Sequence record: OR620964.1
Direction: 5' to 3' (one strand)
DNA: 64,000 bases
The first letter of the stretch is position 1. Each line of letters begins with the position of its first letter. The notes beneath the pieces are model-generated. The model saw only the letters and a program-made list of their open reading frames with translations, made no database searches and was not told where the DNA came from. A program made the position numbers and the translations under genes. Shown here one piece after another: positions 1,280 to 16,903 of the stretch.

Positions 1280-2047
1280 ATGAACGTAGATAAAACAATG
1301 CCTTCAGGCAAGTGGGAATTTGATGAACCAGTAGCTGCCGTATTCGATAACATGCTGGCCAACTCGATTCCATCGTATGACCGTATGCGTGACCTGACGT
1401 TTCGCTTGGGTAAACGTTTCGTAACACCTGGTTCAACTATTGTTGATCTTGGTGCATCACTAGGCCGTGCTATTGAACCGTTCTGTGAGTATTTCGGTCC
1501 GTACATGTATATTCATGCGGCAGATAGACCTGAGCCAGACCGAGAGATAGGCAATCATTACAGCCTGTATGAAACAGCACCTGCAATGCGTGAGCGTCTT
1601 GCGAAGAATGACGTGTTGAATGCGGCAGATGCAAAACTTGAATCCGAATCTCTTGTGGACGTTGATACGTTTCGTTTTAGTGAGCAGGTTGAATGCTCAC
1701 TGATCCTGTCCGTGCTAACACTACAGTTTACGCCTATCGAACATCGCCAACATATTCTGGAAAAGGTCTATGACTCTCTCCAGACAGGTGGTGCATTCAT
1801 TCTTGTTGAAAAGGTTCTTGGCGACGATAACTATCTGGACAAGCTGTTGGTAGATACTTACTATCAGATGAAAGGTGGTAACGGGTACTCGCAAGAATCC
1901 ATTGCTACCAAGCGTAAGTCGCTAGAAGGTGTTCTGGTTCCTGTTAAGGCAGCGTGGAATGAAGAACTATTACGCAAGGCAGGATTTAGCCGCGTTGAAT
2001 GCTTCTACCGAGATCTTAACTTCGCTGGATGGATCGCGATCAAGTAA
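1280..2047 (+). CDS. cmoA: carboxy-S-adenosyl-L-methionine (Cx-SAM) synthase, CmoA family
   Basis: WEFDEPVAAVFDNMLANSIPSY, IVDLGASLG, LTLQF, GGAFILVEK, NGYSQESIATKRKSLEGVL and AGFSRVE..LNFAGWIAIK align motif by motif with E. coli CmoA ([52 protein letters not shown]), including the Arg of the KR motif. Confidence 0.93.
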   Translation: MNVDKTMPSGKWEFDEPVAAVFDNMLANSIPSYDRMRDLTFRLGKRFVTPGSTIVDLGASLGRAIEPFCEYFGPYMYIHAADRPEPDREIGNHYSLYETAPAMRERLAKNDVLNAADAKLESESLVDVDTFRFSEQVECSLILSVLTLQFTPIEHRQHILEKVYDSLQTGGAFILVEKVLGDDNYLDKLLVDTYYQMKGGNGYSQESIATKRKSLEGVLVPVKAAWNEELLRKAGFSRVECFYRDLNFAGWIAIK

Positions 2048-2099: not shown

Positions 2100-2954
2100 G
2101 TGTCTAAGGCACTGGCGATTTCTAAAGTAATCAGACGCACATTGGTGAGCACGTTTAAGAACGCGAAAACAGAACGTCCGTTCGTGTTCCTGTCCAGCGG
2201 CGCTGATAGTAACTGTCTTTTGTTCGCTGCGCTTGAGGCAGGCAAGCAACCAGTTACACTATCATTTCATATGGAAGGTACTATTAGTCGTGACTTCCGT
2301 CAGGCGCAAGCAACTGCCAAACTGTTTAACGTACCGTTCATTGAAGTTGTATTACCTACCAACGTCGAGACACTCAAGAAAGAGTGCATACTATTAGCCA
2401 AGAAATACGGATGTCGTAGTAAGTCTGACTTCGAATGTGTCTGGCCTATGTACCACGCGTTCCGTGCTGTTGCGAAATATGCAAAGAAACACAAGATTGC
2501 TTCACCTACAATCTACACAGGTCATGCGGCTGATATATACTACGTTCTTTCCAAGAAAGGTAACATGCATTATAAAGATCGCCCAGACGATTATCGCAAT
2601 GAGCGCTTTGTAGATCCTAAACTATCACAGAGACACATACTGCCTTCGATTGCTTCTGACCTTGAAATTTCTAATGAAATACCATGGGTCGATAAGAAAA
2701 TCTTGAAATCATTCCAAGGTGCTTCTATCGCTGACGTCAATAAGCCTCGTCAGAAAGAGCCGTCACGTCTAGCCTTTGATAGTTATTTCTCCCAAACGAA
2801 AGTCTATCAACATACGAATTTCCAACTCGGTGATAGCGGCATTTCGAAACATTTTGAAGTATTGTTGTCAGATCCTGAATGGAATCCCGACAACAAGTTT
2901 CGTGCTGTCATCGGTGTGTACAACGAACTCTGCCGAAGACTCGGAGTGGCGTAA
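2100..2954 (+). CDS. asparagine-synthetase-like (N-type ATP pyrophosphatase) amide ligase lacking the glutaminase domain; CmoY-like candidate
   Basis: PP-loop VFLSSGADS, D...A...A..F.VP.IEV, and IYTGHAADIYY (cf. TGxGADE); 284 aa, synthetase domain only; GTG start at 2100 behind AAGGAG (the track start at 1929 overlaps cmoA). Confidence 0.82.
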   Translation: MSKALAISKVIRRTLVSTFKNAKTERPFVFLSSGADSNCLLFAALEAGKQPVTLSFHMEGTISRDFRQAQATAKLFNVPFIEVVLPTNVETLKKECILLAKKYGCRSKSDFECVWPMYHAFRAVAKYAKKHKIASPTIYTGHAADIYYVLSKKGNMHYKDRPDDYRNERFVDPKLSQRHILPSIASDLEISNEIPWVDKKILKSFQGASIADVNKPRQKEPSRLAFDSYFSQTKVYQHTNFQLGDSGISKHFEVLLSDPEWNPDNKFRAVIGVYNELCRRLGVA

Positions 2955-3526
2955 TGATTCGCGTATTTGATTCCGGCGCAGGAGGAGCATACGTATCGGA
3001 GTTGCTTACTGCGCACGGAGTACATAACAAACTAAGCATGTTCCCTAACATGTTCCCGTTTGGTACTAAGACAGCCGACCAGTTACTTAGCTTATTTCAT
3101 GATTATCGGAATAGTGTTACTGGTACTGTTTTCTGTGCTTGTAACACTATGAGTCTTGTGCTTAACTCCAATGGGTACGACTTTACCTCATGTGATGTTA
3201 TTCCTACATTTCCTAATCTGTCTCCTGATGCGCCAGTTTGCTACGGCACAAAGAATACAGTTTGTCTGGCTCAGATACTGTCACCTAACCTTAGAGTTCG
3301 TGCCGTGCCTAATCTTGTTTCTATGGCAGAAGATGTATATCAAGGTAGGGCTGATAGGAAAACAGCGCTGGCATTATGGGAACAAGAAGTTAGAGAAACA
3401 ATTCAACTAGGATCTACACACTTGTCATGGCTAGCCCATACTTTAGGTGTAGCTGGTGATCATGTTGAGCCGGACTATATGCGCTTATACGTAGAGCATC
3501 TGTCTGACGAAACAATAGGCATATAG
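2954..3526 (+). CDS. glutamate racemase (MurI)-like protein, second catalytic Cys replaced by Ser
   Basis: IRVFDSGAGG, PFGTKT, FCACNTMS and QLGSTHL (canonical LGCTH); ATG overlaps the ligase stop (TAATG); 190 aa. Confidence 0.85.
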   Translation: MIRVFDSGAGGAYVSELLTAHGVHNKLSMFPNMFPFGTKTADQLLSLFHDYRNSVTGTVFCACNTMSLVLNSNGYDFTSCDVIPTFPNLSPDAPVCYGTKNTVCLAQILSPNLRVRAVPNLVSMAEDVYQGRADRKTALALWEQEVRETIQLGSTHLSWLAHTLGVAGDHVEPDYMRLYVEHLSDETIGI

Positions 3527-3541
3527 CTTCTGGATATAATA

Positions 3542-4177
3542 ATGAAAAAGATTATTAATGTTTTCGATTCTGTTCTAGGTGCGAACTATGTATGTGGTCT
3601 ATTATGTGACGCTGGCTATGATGCGCGTCCGTATACACCACGACGTCAATACGTATCTCGCACGAACTCCGGCCCGGCGTTAACTATTGGCACACGAAGT
3701 GTTGAAGAGGTTAGCGACGAAATAAGCGAGGCGCTTGTTGCGATTCGTGGTAACTGGCTAATCAGTAGTACATCTGCCAGTCTTGTTGCACAGGATATGC
3801 TTGACCTGAAAGGGCTGTCTGAGAATATTGTATATGCAATTCCTGAACTTGATGGTAACCTACCTATATTGGGATCTGCCTTGACCGTCGATAGGGCTAG
3901 ACGCATACAGCGATTGCAATCAATCCATCGACGAGGCAAAAGCTCAAGAGCAGCACCGCTAGTCGATGCTTCGGATTTGTTGGCGCAATTTGAAAACTTA
4001 GCGTACTACGAAGATGAGCCTCAGGCATTCCGTCCTGAATTCGATGCGCTTGTTGGCGATAAGAAGTTTCAGTTAGGTAGTTCTAACCTTGCTCACTATG
4101 CCAAGCTGTGTAAAATTACAAAGCACACAGTTATTGATTATGTAGGTCTGGTGGCACGTCACTTGGAGACAAGATGA
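3542..4177 (+). CDS. degenerate glutamate-racemase-fold paralogue, both catalytic Cys absent
   Basis: INVFDSVLGA, IGTRSVEEV, ISSTSAS (for ACNTAS), QLGSSNL (for LGCTHY), VIDYVGLVARH. Confidence 0.7.
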   Translation: MKKIINVFDSVLGANYVCGLLCDAGYDARPYTPRRQYVSRTNSGPALTIGTRSVEEVSDEISEALVAIRGNWLISSTSASLVAQDMLDLKGLSENIVYAIPELDGNLPILGSALTVDRARRIQRLQSIHRRGKSSRAAPLVDASDLLAQFENLAYYEDEPQAFRPEFDALVGDKKFQLGSSNLAHYAKLCKITKHTVIDYVGLVARHLETR

Positions 4178-5964: not shown

Positions 5965-6792
5965 ATGACGTACATTAGCCCAATGCGGTATCAAGGATGC
6001 AAGCGCTCTCTGGTGCCGGTTATCAAAGAACTCATGCCACAAGATTGTACTCGGATGATTGATGCATTTGGTGGCTCTGCTACTGTGGTGCTAAATATGG
6101 ATACCAAGCACCGCCTGTATAACGAGAGCAATTTCCATGTATTTAAAATCATCGAACTATTTGCCAGAACAGACCCGAAGAAAACACTGAGCAAAATACG
6201 CCGAGTGATAAAGCGATTTGATCTAACAACCGATAACGATGAGCAGTATTATGAATTCCGTAGTTATGCTAATCGTCGGTATGATCCATTGTTGTTTTAT
6301 ATTCTGTCCCGTCATGCTCACAGCAACATGATTCGTTTCAACGGTAATGATGGATTCAATGCTCCGTTTGGTAAGCGAAGCCTGATAGGTAAGATGGATG
6401 TTCTTGAGCGTGAGGTAGTTGAGTTTTATGATAGAATGCATAACGTGCAATTGTCTAATTCTCGATATGCAGAACTACTTAATCGCATAAGCCACCAGCT
6501 CGATTCTACTTTCATCTATCTTGATCCTCCTTACTTGGCCAGCGGTGCAAACATCTATGACTCTTGGTCTGAGGAATTGGATATCAAGATGATGGCCAAC
6601 CTTGATGCTTTAGATGCAAAGAATGTTAAGTGGATGATGAGTAACGTTCTTACACACCGGCATTTCGAAAACAAGCGACTGGCTCGTTGGGCTAAAAACT
6701 ATCGTCTTATTGACGTAGACAAAACGTATAGTCTTGCGAATGCACAACAAGATAGCCACTCAACCCGTGAAGTGATTATCGTTAACTACTGA
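5965..6792 (+). CDS. dam: Dam-family (D12 class) N6-adenine DNA methyltransferase
   Basis: PMRYQGCKRSL, IDAFGGSATV (motif I), FIYLDPPY (motif IV), WMMSN, REVIIVNY. Confidence 0.92.
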   Translation: MTYISPMRYQGCKRSLVPVIKELMPQDCTRMIDAFGGSATVVLNMDTKHRLYNESNFHVFKIIELFARTDPKKTLSKIRRVIKRFDLTTDNDEQYYEFRSYANRRYDPLLFYILSRHAHSNMIRFNGNDGFNAPFGKRSLIGKMDVLEREVVEFYDRMHNVQLSNSRYAELLNRISHQLDSTFIYLDPPYLASGANIYDSWSEELDIKMMANLDALDAKNVKWMMSNVLTHRHFENKRLARWAKNYRLIDVDKTYSLANAQQDSHSTREVIIVNY

Positions 6793-8089: not shown

Positions 8090-8498
8090 CAAACTAAAAG
8101 AGCTGTGGGAGAAACGACATGAACTCGCGGCGCAGTTAGCAGAACTGAATGGCTGGACTGTGCAAGATGGTTGGTCCTACGCCGAGTGTAGTGATGTACC
8201 TGCATGGTTCGATGCGCGTGGACAACAGGTACATACGGTTGATGGGTATATGTACCTGTTGTTTGGTACAAAGTTCTGTATTGATACGATGGATCAATAC
8301 AACATGACGGTTGACCGATCTGATACTGGACTTAGACGTGTATCCTTTTCCGTGTTGCTCGATCCCGTAGAAGAAGCAGTTACCTTTGAGGGAGTAGCGC
8401 ACGGAATACAAGAAGCGCTTGTCTTATCTATAATAAATTTCTATGCGTATACAAAGCGCACACAAGAGGTAAACAATGGAACTACCATTATCAATTGA
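8079..8498 (+). CDS. hypothetical protein
   Basis: ORF in the run; ATG 8079 preferred over 8061; weak resemblance of AAQLAELNGW..WFD to small phage sandwich domains. Confidence 0.7.
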   Translation: MLNDKLKELWEKRHELAAQLAELNGWTVQDGWSYAECSDVPAWFDARGQQVHTVDGYMYLLFGTKFCIDTMDQYNMTVDRSDTGLRRVSFSVLLDPVEEAVTFEGVAHGIQEALVLSIINFYAYTKRTQEVNNGTTIIN

Positions 8499-8979
8499 AA
8501 AATGCGTCGCACTTGTTGCTCAGTGCTTTACGCTTGCTACAAGTTCTAAATCAAAACGACGAGCCTGTGGAGCACTGCTTGTTTGTGTACGTGAAGACGG
8601 TGTGCCCGTTGTTATCAGCTCTGGCATTAATGGTACTGCCCCTGGTGCAGATAATGCTTGTGAGCCACCTTGTCTGACATATACATTTGGTCATGTTGTT
8701 CACGCAGAGCCAAATTGTCTAGCTAACTTTGATTCTGATTTTGTGTTCACTGATAGACATATTCTGTTTGTATCGGATAGCCCGTGCCCACACTGCTTCA
8801 AGATAATTGCAGAGCGGGGTATTAAGCACGTTGTGTTCGGCAGGGGTTATCGTATTCAAGAGCATCTAACCGATGAGGTTCTGGCACTTCACGGTATGAC
8901 TCTGACTCAGGTAGATATGCAGAACGTGATTCAATATCTGTCTAACACTGTTACCAGAATTGAACAGGTGATTTGCTAA
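8476..8979 (+). CDS. dCMP deaminase
   Basis: GINGTAPG, zinc motifs HAEPNC and SPCPHC, GIKHVVF. Confidence 0.92.
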   Translation: MELPLSIEKCVALVAQCFTLATSSKSKRRACGALLVCVREDGVPVVISSGINGTAPGADNACEPPCLTYTFGHVVHAEPNCLANFDSDFVFTDRHILFVSDSPCPHCFKIIAERGIKHVVFGRGYRIQEHLTDEVLALHGMTLTQVDMQNVIQYLSNTVTRIEQVIC

Positions 8980-10850: not shown

Positions 10851-11948
10851 ATGTCTCATATTTTTGATTTACGTAATGACGACCACTTCTTTCAATACTC
10901 ACTGGACAATGTAGACTGTCAGTATATGGATCTGGTTAATGCTATTCTGACCGAAGGCACAAAAGAAGCTGATCCGAAACGCAGTGAAGATACTTGGACG
11001 ATGTTACCATCTATCTCTATGACGTTGCGCAATACAGCCATGGCCTTTCCAGTCCTACTATCTAAGCGTACCCGTTACGTGCCAGCTATTGATGAGACGT
11101 GCTGGTTCATGCGCGGTGAGACAAACATCGAGACTCTTAACTCTCGCATATGGGATGAATGGGCAGACGAGTCAGGTGATTGCGGTCCTATCTATGGTTA
11201 CATGTGGCGCCACTGGCCAGATGTAAAAGCATTCCAAGACTTCACTAAGCCATCTGCTGTTTGTCCGTCGGCCGATGCTATCCGTATTCGCAACGAGATT
11301 ATTCGTATGCGCGCCGCTGGATACAAAGAGACTCAGTTGGCTGATGGGCGAATCCTATTTGAAGGTGAAATTGATCAGTTGTTAAATGCACTGAATGCTT
11401 GTGTTGCGCATGACCGTTCTCGTCGTATTAAAGTTGAAGCATGGAATCCTGGGTACATCCATATGCAGGGCCTTCCTCCGTGTCACACTGGTTTTGAATT
11501 CAACGTAACCAAAACTACTGACTATGAGCGTAAGGCAATGGAAGCTATGGGCCATACTGCTTACGAGGATTCGTTACATCTTACTGCCACAATGAGGAGT
11601 CAAGATGTGGCACTTGGAAGAAGTTTTAACATTATTGGCTATACTACGATGCTCCACCTGTTCGCCAAGTATAGCAAGCTAAATATCGGTAGCTTTACGT
11701 TGAACACTTCTAACACGCATGTTTATGACCATCACCGTGAAGGTCTTGAGACACAGCGTAAGCAGTTCCAAGAAATTTTGGACGTTGTGCGGTCTACTGG
11801 TAAGCCTATGCAGTATCCTGTCCTGCATGTTCACGATGATATCATGAAGATGGAGCCAAAAGAAATGCTGGATAGCATTACCAAAGATCATTTTCTTGTT
11901 GAAGGCTATCTGTCTATGCCTGAGATCAAATTCCGCGTCACCAAATAG
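10851..11948 (+). CDS. thyA: thymidylate synthase (ThyA type) with insertions
   Basis: IWDEWAD, GPIYGYMWRHWP, DQL, SRRI...WNP, catalytic LPPCH, RSQD..LG..FNI, HVYDHH. Confidence 0.95.
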   Translation: MSHIFDLRNDDHFFQYSLDNVDCQYMDLVNAILTEGTKEADPKRSEDTWTMLPSISMTLRNTAMAFPVLLSKRTRYVPAIDETCWFMRGETNIETLNSRIWDEWADESGDCGPIYGYMWRHWPDVKAFQDFTKPSAVCPSADAIRIRNEIIRMRAAGYKETQLADGRILFEGEIDQLLNALNACVAHDRSRRIKVEAWNPGYIHMQGLPPCHTGFEFNVTKTTDYERKAMEAMGHTAYEDSLHLTATMRSQDVALGRSFNIIGYTTMLHLFAKYSKLNIGSFTLNTSNTHVYDHHREGLETQRKQFQEILDVVRSTGKPMQYPVLHVHDDIMKMEPKEMLDSITKDHFLVEGYLSMPEIKFRVTK

Positions 11949-14068: not shown

Positions 14069-14815
14069 ATGACAGATAAGCTAAAGAAAAAGGTGAAAGT
14101 TAAAGGGAAAGAAGAACTGGCGCCTAAGAAGAAAAAGTCGAAAGACAAGCCAGTCAATAAAGCTGTTGGTAAGCCTATTACTAGCATCAAGCAACTTAAA
14201 GGTGCTAAGTATAACCCACGGTTTATTACTGATACGCGACTCAAGTCGTTAGAAAGTTCTATCAGCTCTTTCGGCGATTTGTCAGGTGTTGTATTCAACA
14301 ATAACATTGATTCTGGTGTTCTTATCTCTGGCCACCAGCGTATTGCCTCCATTGCAAAGTGGAAGACACGAGTTGAAGTACAGAAAACGACTGATGCGCA
14401 TGGTACTGTTGGCGTTGGATTTATTCATGCCACCAATCCTAAGTCTGAAAAGACAATCAGTATCCCTTTGCGTATTGTTAACTGGTCAGACAGAAAAGCT
14501 GAGTATGCTGCTAACATCGCGGCAAATGCTCATGGTGGTGAATTCGATAACAGTAAGCTGGCTGCTCTGGTTGAGAAACTGGATATGGATAAAATGCCAA
14601 GCTCGTTAATCGGATTAGACCCTTTGCAACTTCGTGGCCTACGTCAACGCCTTGGTCGTGATGCAGAAGCAATCGAAGCTGCGGCTAATGCTAAGAAGGC
14701 ACCGTCTGGTAAGCAGAATGGATCTACCGGTAAGTTTAAAGAATATACAACTGATGACGTCGAGGCTGAATTACAGCATCGTTGCCCACGTTGTGACTTC
14801 CGGTTTAACTCGTAG
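14069..14815 (+). CDS. ParB/Srx-like domain protein with C-terminal CxxC
   Basis: LKGAKYNPR, SISSFGDLSGVVFN, LISGHQRI, ANIAANAHGGEFD, terminal HRCPRCDFRF. Confidence 0.8.
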   Translation: MTDKLKKKVKVKGKEELAPKKKKSKDKPVNKAVGKPITSIKQLKGAKYNPRFITDTRLKSLESSISSFGDLSGVVFNNNIDSGVLISGHQRIASIAKWKTRVEVQKTTDAHGTVGVGFIHATNPKSEKTISIPLRIVNWSDRKAEYAANIAANAHGGEFDNSKLAALVEKLDMDKMPSSLIGLDPLQLRGLRQRLGRDAEAIEAAANAKKAPSGKQNGSTGKFKEYTTDDVEAELQHRCPRCDFRFNS

Positions 14816-14824
14816 GATAATCGT

Positions 14825-16903
14825 ATGGTAATCAAACCACCTACAATGAAAGAGATCAACGCGCTGGAGAAACCTTGGCGCGGTATGAGCTTCTTTGCTG
14901 GATGCGGCGGCTCCAGTACAGGTCACAAGATGAGTGGCGTTAATATTCTGATTGCAAATGAGTTCGTAGACTCGGCGCGGTTATCATATGAAGCAAACCA
15001 TCCGACGACTAAAATGCTGCCGCAGGATATTCGCCGCTTAGACCCAGCTAAGATTTTGAAGTATCTGGGCCTTAAGAAAGGTGAATTGGATTTGCTTGAT
15101 GGTAGTCCTCCTTGCTTCACAGAAGAGACACTCATTCAGACACGTAGTGGCATGAAGTACATCAACCAAATAGTAGTTGATGACTTTGTTCTTACGCACA
15201 AGCAGCGCTATCGCCGTGTCGTTGAGCCTATGCGTCGCCAGTACACAGGACTAATGCATAAGATTGTTAGTTCTGTAAGTGAGAACAATGCTACACCTGA
15301 ACATCCGTACTATATTCGTCGTATGGAAAATGATGTGCTGTCTGAGCCACAGTGGGTAGATGCAAGAGACGTTCGTGTTGGCGATAAGGTAGCTATTCCT
15401 ACTAGCACACACGCGACTGCTGATCTATCTGAGTGCTCTCAACAGATTCGCCAGTGGGCACAGCATGATGAGTTCTGGTGGTTAGTAGGTCAGTGGGTAG
15501 CTAACGGTAGTATGTCTCGTTGTGGAACACACCGAGCTATTCGTTTTCGTACACACAGCTCCCGTGGTAATCAATTGCTTGAGCAGGCGCTCGACCTGCT
15601 GGAGCTAACATCTATTCAGACTGCGTACTGTGGCGGTAAGTATATAGAGCGCTTTGTTATGAATGAAGAACTGGCAACATTCTTCAAGCTGTTCCTAACA
15701 GATAGTGCTCAAGCCCGACAGATACCAGGCTTTGTTTTAGACTTACCTGACAGGTCACAGCGGCAATTTGTATTCGGCTATCAGTCTCGCTGCTATGAGT
15801 CTACTTTTGGTAAGGCGCTTGTCGTACAAACACGCAGTCTTCCTTTCATGACTGCTATGCGTCACCTAGTTGCTTCTGCGTTCAAGTGCCCGCTGTTTAG
15901 TTTCAATACGCAAGCAGCACCAGAAGAACTTCCTGTTAGTAACTTCACTTATCTACCTGAATCCGAGTGCGGCCAGTGGGTAAACCACCAAGCAGTATTC
16001 TTTATTCAGGAAGAAGATCGTGGTTTTATTCGCGATGCTGATGACTTACTTTGGGTTGATGTGCTGGCCAATACGCAATATGAATCTAGTGTGCAGGTAT
16101 ATAACTTTAGTGTATCACAGGATGAGACGTATGTTGCGACGAATACAGTCGTGCACAACTGTAAGGGGTTCTCTTCTGCTGGCGTTAAAGAGGAAGGCTG
16201 GGGACGGGAAGTAAAATATAGCGAGGATAAAGTCCAACACGTCGATGACCTGTTTGATGAGTTCTGCCGTATGCTTAGTGGTACAATGCCTAAAGTATTT
16301 ACGGCAGAGAATGTAAGTGGTCTGGTTAAAGGTGTGTCTCGTGGATTCTTCATTGAGATAATGAAAGAGTTTGATCGTATCGGATATAAAGTTCGAGCAC
16401 CTTTGATGAATGCTGCTTGGCTTGGCGTACCACAATCGAGAGAGCGTATTCTCTTTATGGGTGTGCGTAAGGATATACCGTTTGATGTGCCTGATGTTGA
16501 GGTTCAAGATACGATAGCCATTCTTGCAGATGCCTTGCCTCACATTGCTGCGTTTAAGGGAATCAGGAATGATATGATTACCTACATTCCTGCAATTAAC
16601 AGTCCGTGCAAGACAATAACAGCAACGGATAGTACGGCATATGAAACAGCACGTTTCAGTACCGCGGGCTTTATCGAAACTATGGAAGGCAAGCGCCGCA
16701 AGCTAACCATTGAAGAACTTAAAGTTATTTCTGGTATGCCTTCTGACTATAAGTTAGTTGGTACTTTCGAGCAACAATGGGAACGACTTGGTCGTGTCTG
16801 TGTTCCGCAGATGACACACGCTGCGTCTAAGGCACTTATCGAGCATGTGTTGATTCCTTATGCGAAGAAGCGTAAGAAGAAAGTTGGGGATATCTTCCGA
16901 TGA
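14825..16903 (+). CDS. C5-cytosine DNA methyltransferase-family enzyme with intein; predicted cytosine carboxymethyltransferase (CmoX-like)
   Basis: Motif I FFAGCGG, ANEF, motif IV GSPP|C (split by the intein), VI AENV, VIII PQSRER, IX R.LTIEELKVISGMP; motif X reads LGRVCVP instead of GNSV/GNAV (Arg codon 16793-16795). Confidence 0.88.
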   Translation: MVIKPPTMKEINALEKPWRGMSFFAGCGGSSTGHKMSGVNILIANEFVDSARLSYEANHPTTKMLPQDIRRLDPAKILKYLGLKKGELDLLDGSPPCFTEETLIQTRSGMKYINQIVVDDFVLTHKQRYRRVVEPMRRQYTGLMHKIVSSVSENNATPEHPYYIRRMENDVLSEPQWVDARDVRVGDKVAIPTSTHATADLSECSQQIRQWAQHDEFWWLVGQWVANGSMSRCGTHRAIRFRTHSSRGNQLLEQALDLLELTSIQTAYCGGKYIERFVMNEELATFFKLFLTDSAQARQIPGFVLDLPDRSQRQFVFGYQSRCYESTFGKALVVQTRSLPFMTAMRHLVASAFKCPLFSFNTQAAPEELPVSNFTYLPESECGQWVNHQAVFFIQEEDRGFIRDADDLLWVDVLANTQYESSVQVYNFSVSQDETYVATNTVVHNCKGFSSAGVKEEGWGREVKYSEDKVQHVDDLFDEFCRMLSGTMPKVFTAENVSGLVKGVSRGFFIEIMKEFDRIGYKVRAPLMNAAWLGVPQSRERILFMGVRKDIPFDVPDVEVQDTIAILADALPHIAAFKGIRNDMITYIPAINSPCKTITATDSTAYETARFSTAGFIETMEGKRRKLTIEELKVISGMPSDYKLVGTFEQQWERLGRVCVPQMTHAASKALIEHVLIPYAKKRKKKVGDIFR
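15113..16159 (+). mobile_element. intein (349 aa) with degenerate LAGLIDADG homing-endonuclease region
   Basis: Starts CFTEETLIQTRSG, block B TPEHPYY, block F VYNFSV, ends VVHN followed by +1 Cys; middle WWLVGQWVANGS and QFVFGYQSRC resemble eroded LAGLIDADG blocks. Confidence 0.93.

Follow-up and report, generated by a model that had tools for sequence, protein, structure and literature searches.

The window analysed here comprises the last 64 kb (64,000 nucleotides; genome positions 184,679-248,678) of Yersinia phage fHe-Yen9-02 (OR620964.1), a 248,678-bp jumbo myovirus that originates from Finnish sewage and has Yersinia enterocolitica O:9 as its host; the full genome was rebuilt for the whole-genome checks. 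Near the start of the window lies cmoA, a homologue of the bacterial gene for carboxy-S-adenosyl-L-methionine (Cx-SAM) synthase, which is followed by genes for a CmoY-like amide ligase and for two proteins related to glutamate racemase (MurI), here called rac1 and rac2. On the same strand, 12.8 kb downstream of cmoA, lies a gene for a putative CmoX-like DNA cytosine C5-carboxymethyltransferase that is interrupted by an intein and directly preceded by a gene for a ParB-like protein (Table 1). The current labels of cmoA, the ligase gene and their neighbours, namely 'tRNA methyltransferase' (given to cmoA in the source record), 'asparagine synthase' and 'hypothetical protein', are misleading.

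Table 1. Positions of the described genes and protein segments in the window, with the observations on which each assignment is based
Feature	Position	Strand	Remarks
cmoA, Cx-SAM synthase homologue	1280..2047	+	255 aa, ATG start; TIGR00740, PDB and PHROG matches
CmoY-like PP-loop (asparagine-synthetase-type) ATP-dependent amide ligase, predicted	2100..2954	+	284 aa; adjoins cmoA; SpCmoY homology
rac1, compact glutamate-racemase (MurI)-fold protein	2954..3526	+	190 aa; C63 in CACNT, S154 in GSTH
rac2, degenerate rac1 paralogue	3542..4177	+	211 aa; without both catalytic Cys
ParB-like DNA-binding protein	14069..14815	+	directly upstream of the CmoX gene; PHROG 620 and PHROG 498
CmoX-like DNA cytosine C5-carboxymethyltransferase precursor, intein-interrupted, predicted	14825..16903	+	692 aa; 8YF3 and PF00145 matches
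N-extein, residues 1-96, ending ...LLDGSPP	14825..15112	+	aligns to SpCmoX residues 21-97, 56% identity
Intein, residues 97-445	15113..16159	+	349 aa; immediately before the motif IV catalytic Cys of the CmoX homologue
C-extein, residues 446-692	16160..16903	+	starts with the catalytic Cys; ERLGR, second Arg = SpCmoX R350

CmoA, CmoX and CmoY are the components of a pathway described in the CmoB-less Synechococcus phage S-B43 (Yang et al., Nat Commun, December 2025; PMC12783734), wherein CmoA makes Cx-SAM, CmoX, a C5-methyltransferase homologue, transfers the carboxymethyl group onto cytosine C5 to give 5-carboxymethylcytosine (5cxmC), and CmoY, an asparagine-synthetase-like ligase, joins glycine to 5cxmC to give 5-glycylcarboxymethylcytosine. 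The S-B43 enzymes are referred to below as SpCmoA, SpCmoX and SpCmoY; the target motif of SpCmoX is GC.

CmoA, the adjoining ligase and the search for CmoB

A preliminary description of this DNA had taken the open reading frame (ORF) at 1280-2047 for a full-length, near motif-complete CmoA that includes the Arg of a 'KR' pair, and this assignment is confirmed, homology identifying the product as a full-length, diverged CmoA homologue. It matches the NCBIfam CmoA model with E 3.2e-42 and 144.9 bits, the bacterial equivalog cut-off being 193.3 bits (curated model TIGR00740 / PRK15451), the CmoA/YecO structures 4gek, 1im8 and 4iwn with E 5e-30 to 4e-27, and PHROG 4752 with E 3e-80. Its identity to the E. 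coli enzyme is 32%, and to SpCmoA 29%. On TIGR00740 the biochemically validated phage enzyme SpCmoA reaches only 115.6 bits, below the score of the fHe-Yen9-02 protein, and therefore the equivalog cut-off does not discriminate in this case and would not by itself argue against function of the latter.

Among the cofactor-contacting residues of E. coli CmoA listed by Byrne et al. 2013 (PMC3663124), Y39, D62, G64, S66, A70, D117, F137, E164 and R199 (E. coli numbering) are identical in the phage protein according to a MAFFT alignment, while D89 is replaced by E, I118 by V, N90 by T and N132 by V; of the contacts to the SAM moiety (Y39, D62, G64, S66, D89, D117 and F137), D89 is thus the only one changed. 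Between motifs I and II the phage protein has about 20 inserted residues. Arg199 of E. coli CmoA forms a salt bridge to the cofactor carboxylate and is a conserved residue of CmoA that ordinary S-adenosyl-L-methionine (SAM) methyltransferases do not share (PMC3663124). It corresponds to R212 of phage CmoA, the Arg of the KR pair, in both the MAFFT alignment and the phmmer alignment to 4gek. In a three-way alignment, SpCmoA (locus L003, 5249-5944) has Glu, preceded by Lys, in this column, where the Yersinia phage CmoA has Arg; possibly Cx-SAM synthesis does not strictly depend on the 'diagnostic' Arg199, the other possibility being a one-residue shift of the alignment at this point.

A homologue of CmoB was detected neither in the window nor elsewhere in the genome: E. 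coli CmoB gave at best E 0.19 over 29 residues by tblastn against the 248,678-bp sequence, and E 0.14 with 7 bits by phmmer --max against the 1,205 six-frame ORFs of at least 60 aa from the whole genome. A long but weak CmoB alignment on the minus strand at genome positions 71,747-72,583 (E 4.9-6.9), a region without any Pfam domain, was dismissed. ARAGORN found no tRNA genes in the window or in the whole genome, which rules out phage-encoded tRNAs as targets of Cx-SAM. The preliminary statement that the 64 kb hold no CmoB can thus be extended, at the sensitivity of these searches, to the complete genome. The same description had asked for a search of the remaining genome, in which only chance-level matches appeared, and had named a cmoB elsewhere, together with an absence of DNA carboxymethylation, as what would contradict the consumption of Cx-SAM by DNA modification; with cmoB missing genome-wide, the part of this that concerns cmoB is answered. 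As judged from its genes, fHe-Yen9-02 appears to encode nothing able to use Cx-SAM on tRNA.

The predicted ligase encoded next to cmoA aligns with SpCmoY from end to end (blastp E 2e-30, 31% identity over 252 aa; tblastn E 4e-27), carries the PP-loop SSGADS and matches PHROG 26038 with E 5e-68. It misses the Pfam Asn_synthase model, reaching only QueC (E 0.009), whereas its clade relatives and SpCmoY reach Asn_synthase; a PDB sequence search with it returned no match. The GenBank coding sequence starts at ATG 1959 and so overlaps cmoA by 89 nt. However, GTG 2100 has an AAGGAG 7 nt before it, and the ligase homologues of loci L010-L013 are 284 aa long and start at the aligned position; because of these two observations, GTG 2100 is probably the start, and not the annotated ATG. 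The genes cmoA, ligase, rac1 and rac2 are packed with, in order, a 52-nt gap, a 1-nt overlap, a 15-nt gap and a 4-nt overlap, and this tight packing suggests their co-expression.

The CmoX homologue and its intein

The best PDB match of the 692-aa protein is SpCmoX (8YF3, E 7e-52), the next being M.HaeIII with 3e-16, and Pfam DNA_methylase PF00145 is matched with E 4e-36. After splicing in silico, the resulting 343-aa protein matches SpCmoX with E 1e-68 and 36-40% identity. The residues F25, E47, F48, D69, S95-P96-P97-C98 and R350 of SpCmoX, and with them all its named Cx-SAM contacts, are kept. Candidate CmoX proteins have been defined by the motif SPPC and by an Arg (R350) that replaces the Asn of methyltransferase motif X and binds the carboxylate, and wild-type SpCmoX uses Cx-SAM only, while its R350N variant is inactive (PMC12783734). 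In the fHe-Yen9-02 protein, ERLGR aligns with ERVGR of SpCmoX, such that R350 equals R308 of the spliced form and R657 of the precursor, at the position of N304 in M.HhaI. The GSPPC of the precursor uses intein residue 1 as its Cys, and GSPP followed by CKGFS is restored on in-silico splicing. The alignments thus support the presence of both published marks of Cx-SAM-dependent enzymes, SPPC and the Arg at 350, in a putative CmoX whose function would depend on the predicted splicing. An engineered precedent is the CpG methyltransferase M.MpeI N374K, which was made to use Cx-SAM (cited in PMC12783734); in both proteins a basic residue in place of the motif X Asn would admit the carboxymethyl donor to a C5-methyltransferase scaffold, but this residue is an engineered Lys in M.MpeI and a natural Arg in the fHe-Yen9-02 CmoX homologue.

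The stop codon of the ParB-like gene lies 10 nt before the CmoX gene, and its product matches PHROG 620, 'ParB-like partition protein', with E 3.5e-31 and PHROG 498, the N-terminal part of a DNA methyltransferase family, with E 1e-18; neither a Pfam match nor a PDB sequence match was found for it. ParBc-domain genes are frequent neighbours of CmoX (PMC12783734).

The intein starts with CFTEETLIQT, has TPEH as block B and ends with VVHN, followed by Cys+1. Its removal yields GSPP joined to CKGFSSAG, and the joined sequence aligns without a gap to SpCmoX (GSPPCSAFSVAG); therefore, the +1 splice nucleophile would at the same time be the catalytic Cys of the transferase. All marks of a class 1 intein are found, that is, Cys1, a TxxH block B, a C-terminal HN, a Cys at +1 and a host motif restored by excision, and residues 97-321 match PHROG 26446, an intein-bearing ribonucleotide reductase (RNR) family, with E 5e-12. 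No homing-endonuclease Pfam domain was detected in the intein, and its PDB sequence search gave no match. From these motifs we infer that the CmoX precursor undergoes intein splicing.

In a search of 50,697 phage records, the counts were identical for CmoA, for the ligase and for the CmoX with its intein: 48 from Erwinia, 2 from Dickeya and 1 from Yersinia. The CmoX of this clade is full-length and intein-bearing in all 51 of 51 records, at 53-62% identity, which indicates that the intein is old and maintained and not a recent invasion. Like the inteins in phage terminase, RNR and helicase, which lie in essential enzymes, it sits at the most conserved catalytic motif and shows C1, TxxH, the terminal HN and Cys+1, but it interrupts a homologue of DNA C5-(carboxy)methyltransferases, in which the +1 nucleophile is the catalytic Cys. 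A non-exhaustive literature search found no report of a +1 Cys that doubles as the catalytic Cys of a DNA C5-(carboxy)methyltransferase. The CmoX intein could offer a simple, testable case of a splicing-dependent DNA-modification enzyme.

In the remainder of the genome, several genes for replication and packaging are unusually long, encoding a terminase of 938 aa, a UvsX-like protein of 1,167 aa and a helicase of 2,458 aa (genome positions 176495-179311, 118205-121708 and 63858-71234, respectively). As terminase inteins in the phage group of fHe-Yen9-02 were reported in the PaBG paper, further inteins are likely in OR620964.1.

Proposed pathway and competing explanations

Based on these findings, we propose that the orphan cmoA is probably part of a CmoA-CmoX-CmoY-type pathway by which the phage hypermodifies its DNA. 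CmoA would convert SAM and prephenate to Cx-SAM in the infected Yersinia and so add to the host supply, as its homology to E. coli CmoA and SpCmoA suggests. The 692-aa CmoX precursor would splice, as expected from its intact splicing motifs, whereby GSPP would be joined to CKGFSSAG and motif IV with the catalytic Cys would be built. The spliced CmoX could then move the carboxymethyl group of Cx-SAM to cytosine C5 of phage DNA to form 5cxmC, the Arg in ERLGR binding the carboxylate as does R350 of SpCmoX. Upon this, the PP-loop ligase would adenylate the 5cxmC carboxylate and join an amine to it as an amide, while rac1 and rac2 probably supply, select or process an amino-acid substrate. Such modification would protect the DNA from host restriction and from further defences that target DNA. 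The preliminary description had supposed a DNA transferase in the window to be the consumer of Cx-SAM; the homologues of CmoA, CmoX and CmoY, their co-occurrence and the lack of CmoB lend support to this supposition as an instance of a known pathway, and SpCmoX, the best solved relative of the putative transferase, shares with it both SPPC and R350.

That a CmoB-less phage CmoA feeds a DNA carboxymethyltransferase was already published in December 2025, and fHe-Yen9-02 represents a variant of that system and not a new kind. It resembles S-B43 in having homologues of all three enzymes at the identities given above, with SPPC, R350 and the Cx-SAM contacts kept, as well as in the ParB-like neighbour and the lack of CmoB. 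However, S-B43 has one cmoA-cmoY-cmoX operon, whereas in fHe-Yen9-02, a 249-kb jumbo myovirus of an enterobacterium, the genes form two separate modules; its CmoX homologue carries an intein at the catalytic Cys, its ligase is of another subtype and is coupled to a MurI-fold protein with a degenerate paralogue, and its CmoA keeps Arg199 where SpCmoA has Glu. The intein-interrupted writer, the coupling of the ligase to a MurI-fold protein with a paralogue and the variable ligase cassette beside a conserved CmoA are not described in PMC12783734, wherein the CmoX set comprises 5,615 sequences; Erwinia, Yersinia, Dickeya, PaBG, inteins and racemases are not mentioned in that paper or its supplements. 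The present case extends the general idea to a cultured enterobacterial jumbo phage, and its value is practical and comparative: the hosts of fHe-Yen9-02 and of about 50 Erwinia/Dickeya relatives are tractable, and a direct reading of the predicted 5cxmC-amide chemistry by liquid chromatography-mass spectrometry (LC-MS) could therefore be obtained.

The classical role of CmoA is the synthesis, together with CmoB, of 5-carboxymethoxyuridine (cmo5U), found at position 34 of tRNA (cmo5U34), and in E. coli K-12 the two genes (b1870/b1871) overlap in one operon. Phage CmoA shares the fold and cofactor residues of the bacterial enzyme, including Arg199, and departs from it in its low identity, its insertion and its score below the equivalog cut-off. 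Labelled 'tRNA methyltransferase' by the annotators of the record, it could raise Cx-SAM for the host CmoB, so that more cmo5U34 in host tRNA would allow better reading of phage codons during infection. Yet the phage encodes neither CmoB nor tRNA genes, and the host would make Cx-SAM already. Moreover, in the 51 records cmoA is found along with genes for a CmoY ligase and a DNA transferase of the Cx-SAM type, and these genes are lost jointly: according to Day et al. 2018, the 'methyltransferase' (CmoA), an asparagine synthase, a DNA-cytosine methyltransferase and an adjacent 'repressor' are common to phages AD1 and Y3 and absent from the related JA11. The CmoA of S-B43, a phage that lacks CmoB, has been shown to serve DNA modification. 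We regard the tRNA role as very unlikely, although a side effect on host cmo5U, as raised in the preliminary description, may arise through the host CmoB. It is also very unlikely that CmoA acts mainly as a sink that lowers SAM against SAM-dependent host defences, in the manner of phage SAM lyases, with Cx-SAM as a by-product. The authors of PMC12783734 raised this as an open question, and found SpCmoA to be about 10 times faster than E. coli CmoA; but a SAM sink leaves the constant company of an Arg-bearing CmoX and a ligase unexplained, the stoichiometric need for prephenate would limit the drain of SAM, and such an effect could be an added benefit of the pathway, not an alternative to it.

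Highly improbable, too, is that the 692-aa protein is an ordinary 5-methylcytosine (5mC) methyltransferase, or one that the intein has disrupted and left dead, and that the Cx-SAM goes to some other, unrecognised acceptor enzyme or to a small-molecule pathway encoded in the cluster of cmoA, ligase and racemase-like genes. The gene order is in line with such a division, as cmoA adjoins the ligase and racemase-like genes and not the methyltransferase; ligase and short-MurI pairs occur on other phage contigs (L020, L010) with no CmoA or CmoX in the fetched flanks, and Cx-SAM is also used in bacterial natural-product synthesis (PMC12783734). Nevertheless, the protein matches SpCmoX far better (E 7e-52) than SAM-using C5-methyltransferases (3e-16 or weaker) and has Arg where 5mC enzymes have Asn, and the intact state of all splicing residues, together with the presence of the intein-bearing gene in 51 records, is unexpected for a pseudogene.

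Several points weigh against the proposed CmoA-CmoX-CmoY-type pathway itself. What speaks for it is homology and gene context, and all 24 public runs that contain fHe-Yen9-02 DNA consist of assembled contigs, a format incapable of showing modification. Phage CmoA scores under the NCBIfam equivalog cut-off and has not kept the N90 and N132 of the E. coli enzyme. The distance of 12.8 kb between cmoA and the CmoX gene differs from their adjacency in S-B43. Splicing is deduced from motifs only, with Hint-family Pfam scores below gathering (Intein_splicing 29.4 versus 35.8, Hint_2 23.1 versus 28.4), and an unspliced precursor would be without a contiguous motif IV. Furthermore, the host presumably has a cmoA of its own, and the need for a phage copy is therefore an argument on flux, not on necessity.

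Racemase-fold partners and the variable ligase cassette

The 1-nt overlap between the ligase and rac1 is that of the ligase TAA stop with the rac1 ATG, an arrangement of translational coupling, and this coupling of the ligase to a MurI-like protein would argue for a substrate other than glycine. The AlphaFold2 (AF2) model of rac1 has a predicted local distance difference test (pLDDT) score of 95.4, and a search of the PDB with this model brought up glutamate racemases in each of the first 39 places (TMq 0.54-0.68). A hidden Markov model of the rac1 family matches E. coli MurI with E 1.5e-12, pairing C92 with C63 and C204 with S154; the FDSGxGG, FPxGxK, ACNT and xTH motifs are in register, and the last about 70 MurI residues are missing. 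In 13 rac1 family members the second catalytic Cys is an invariant Ser. Thus, rac1 shares with MurI (PDB 2jfo, 1zuw, 2jfn) the fold, these motifs, the ACNT Cys and the xTH His, but is compact in comparison with the about 260-285 aa of MurI, has Ser in place of the second Cys and lies within a predicted phage DNA-modification cluster. Neither rac1 nor rac2 has a Pfam match, and a PDB sequence search with rac1 returned chance matches only.

The relation of rac2 to rac1 rests on an hhalign comparison of the two families (98.1% probability, E 1e-13, 182 columns; pairwise blastp E 0.002), as the AF2 model of rac2 was poor (pLDDT 53.5, 4-row alignment) and was not used. It has Ser at both catalytic positions, and its invariant residues are D9, S76, S80, D88 and S180. 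Glutamate racemases are defined by two catalytic Cys, in ACNT and GCTH; with Cys/Ser in rac1 and Ser/Ser in rac2, the two proteins have a MurI fold but should not be classed as glutamate racemases. For rac1, a single-Cys role like that of arylmalonate decarboxylase was considered and not adopted, no substrate logic supporting it.

That of fHe-Yen9-02 is the sole rac1 match among the phage records, and the family is tiny, with 3 clusters at E < 1e-30 among 1.84 billion representatives. There are 12 metagenomic rac1 homologues, and in 4/4 fetched loci (P0002, P0011, P0012), which represent 3 distinct metagenomic phage contigs, the homologue lies directly after a ligase of the same subtype (76-83% identical). 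The pairing extends to short MurI-like proteins of greater distance: P0016 and P0023, in which neither Cys is lost, are each encoded directly after a ligase that is 38-40% identical to that of fHe-Yen9-02. Such pairs of a ligase and a short MurI with both Cys kept lie on metagenomic phage contigs L020 (1798-4731) and L021 (1-1910), next to a weak thymidylate-synthase-like gene and a pyridoxal phosphate (PALP) enzyme in L020 and to a GNAT-like gene in L021; no CmoA or CmoX was found in the short flanks of these pairs, which may serve other carboxylated bases as well. Homologues of rac2 occur in 40 phage records of the clade, the gene following the ligase cassette in every clade relative examined, whereas a word-based homologue search with rac2 returned only itself and an IMG/VR scan one locus.

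Across the Erwinia/Dickeya clade CmoA is 83-94% identical and thus differs by 6-17%, but the ligase types are mutually only 21-35% identical. The slot from cmoA to the rac2-like gene is a hot spot (L004 14376-15932; L014 1579-4118; L016 1408-6127; L015 2617-4148). It holds a type A ligase and rac1 in fHe-Yen9-02 as well as in loci L012 and L013, a 52%-identical ligase alone in pEa_SNUABM_5, and a type B ligase with a 2-oxoglutarate (2OG)-Fe(II) oxygenase in Y3. In AD1 and Alexandra a DgcN-like protein (NF041892, E 6e-84; DUF1611) is found with a type C ligase, which in pEa_SNUABM_20 is accompanied by a 420-aa protein, a DUF1611 protein (the DgcN Pfam family) and an alanine-racemase-like protein. 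DgcN-like proteins belong to the D-glutamate N-acetyltransferase family, and enzymes of D-amino-acid chemistry recur in the slot.

Because of this recurrence, we tentatively raise a further reading, which on gene context we hold to be possible but rather doubtful: the group attached to the 5cxmC handle might be not glycine but glutamate or another D-amino acid, produced or chosen by phage proteins of the racemase family that form an exchangeable cassette with the ligase, and the writer might be active only after splicing. If so, related phages would carry chemically different cytosine adducts, and the slot could be a hot spot of an arms race. Leads in this direction are the overlap of the ligase stop with the start of the MurI-fold gene, the recurrence of the pair of ligase and short MurI (Cys/Cys) in unrelated phage contigs, and the divergence of the ligases, by 65-79% from one cassette type to another, next to the small differences in CmoA. 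Whether other amines are attached to 5cxmC is a question explicitly raised by the authors of PMC12783734, and the clade, as a natural series of cassettes (MurI-like, DgcN-like, alanine-racemase-like and 2OG oxygenase), offers a direct route to it.

Three further genes of the window deserve mention. A thymidylate synthase homologue (10851-11948) has 365 aa, about 100 more than the 266 positions of the Pfam model, which it spans end to end with E 8.5e-57, and no Hint-domain match was found in it; it may be a plain ThyA that carries an insertion, or a pyrimidine hydroxymethylase. A dCMP deaminase gene lies at 8476-8979. Between the two modules, at 5965-6792, a canonical Dam-family N6-adenine methyltransferase is encoded (TIGR00571 137.6 bits, above the cut-off; DPPY motif), and therefore the phage DNA probably carries GATC-type methylation too.

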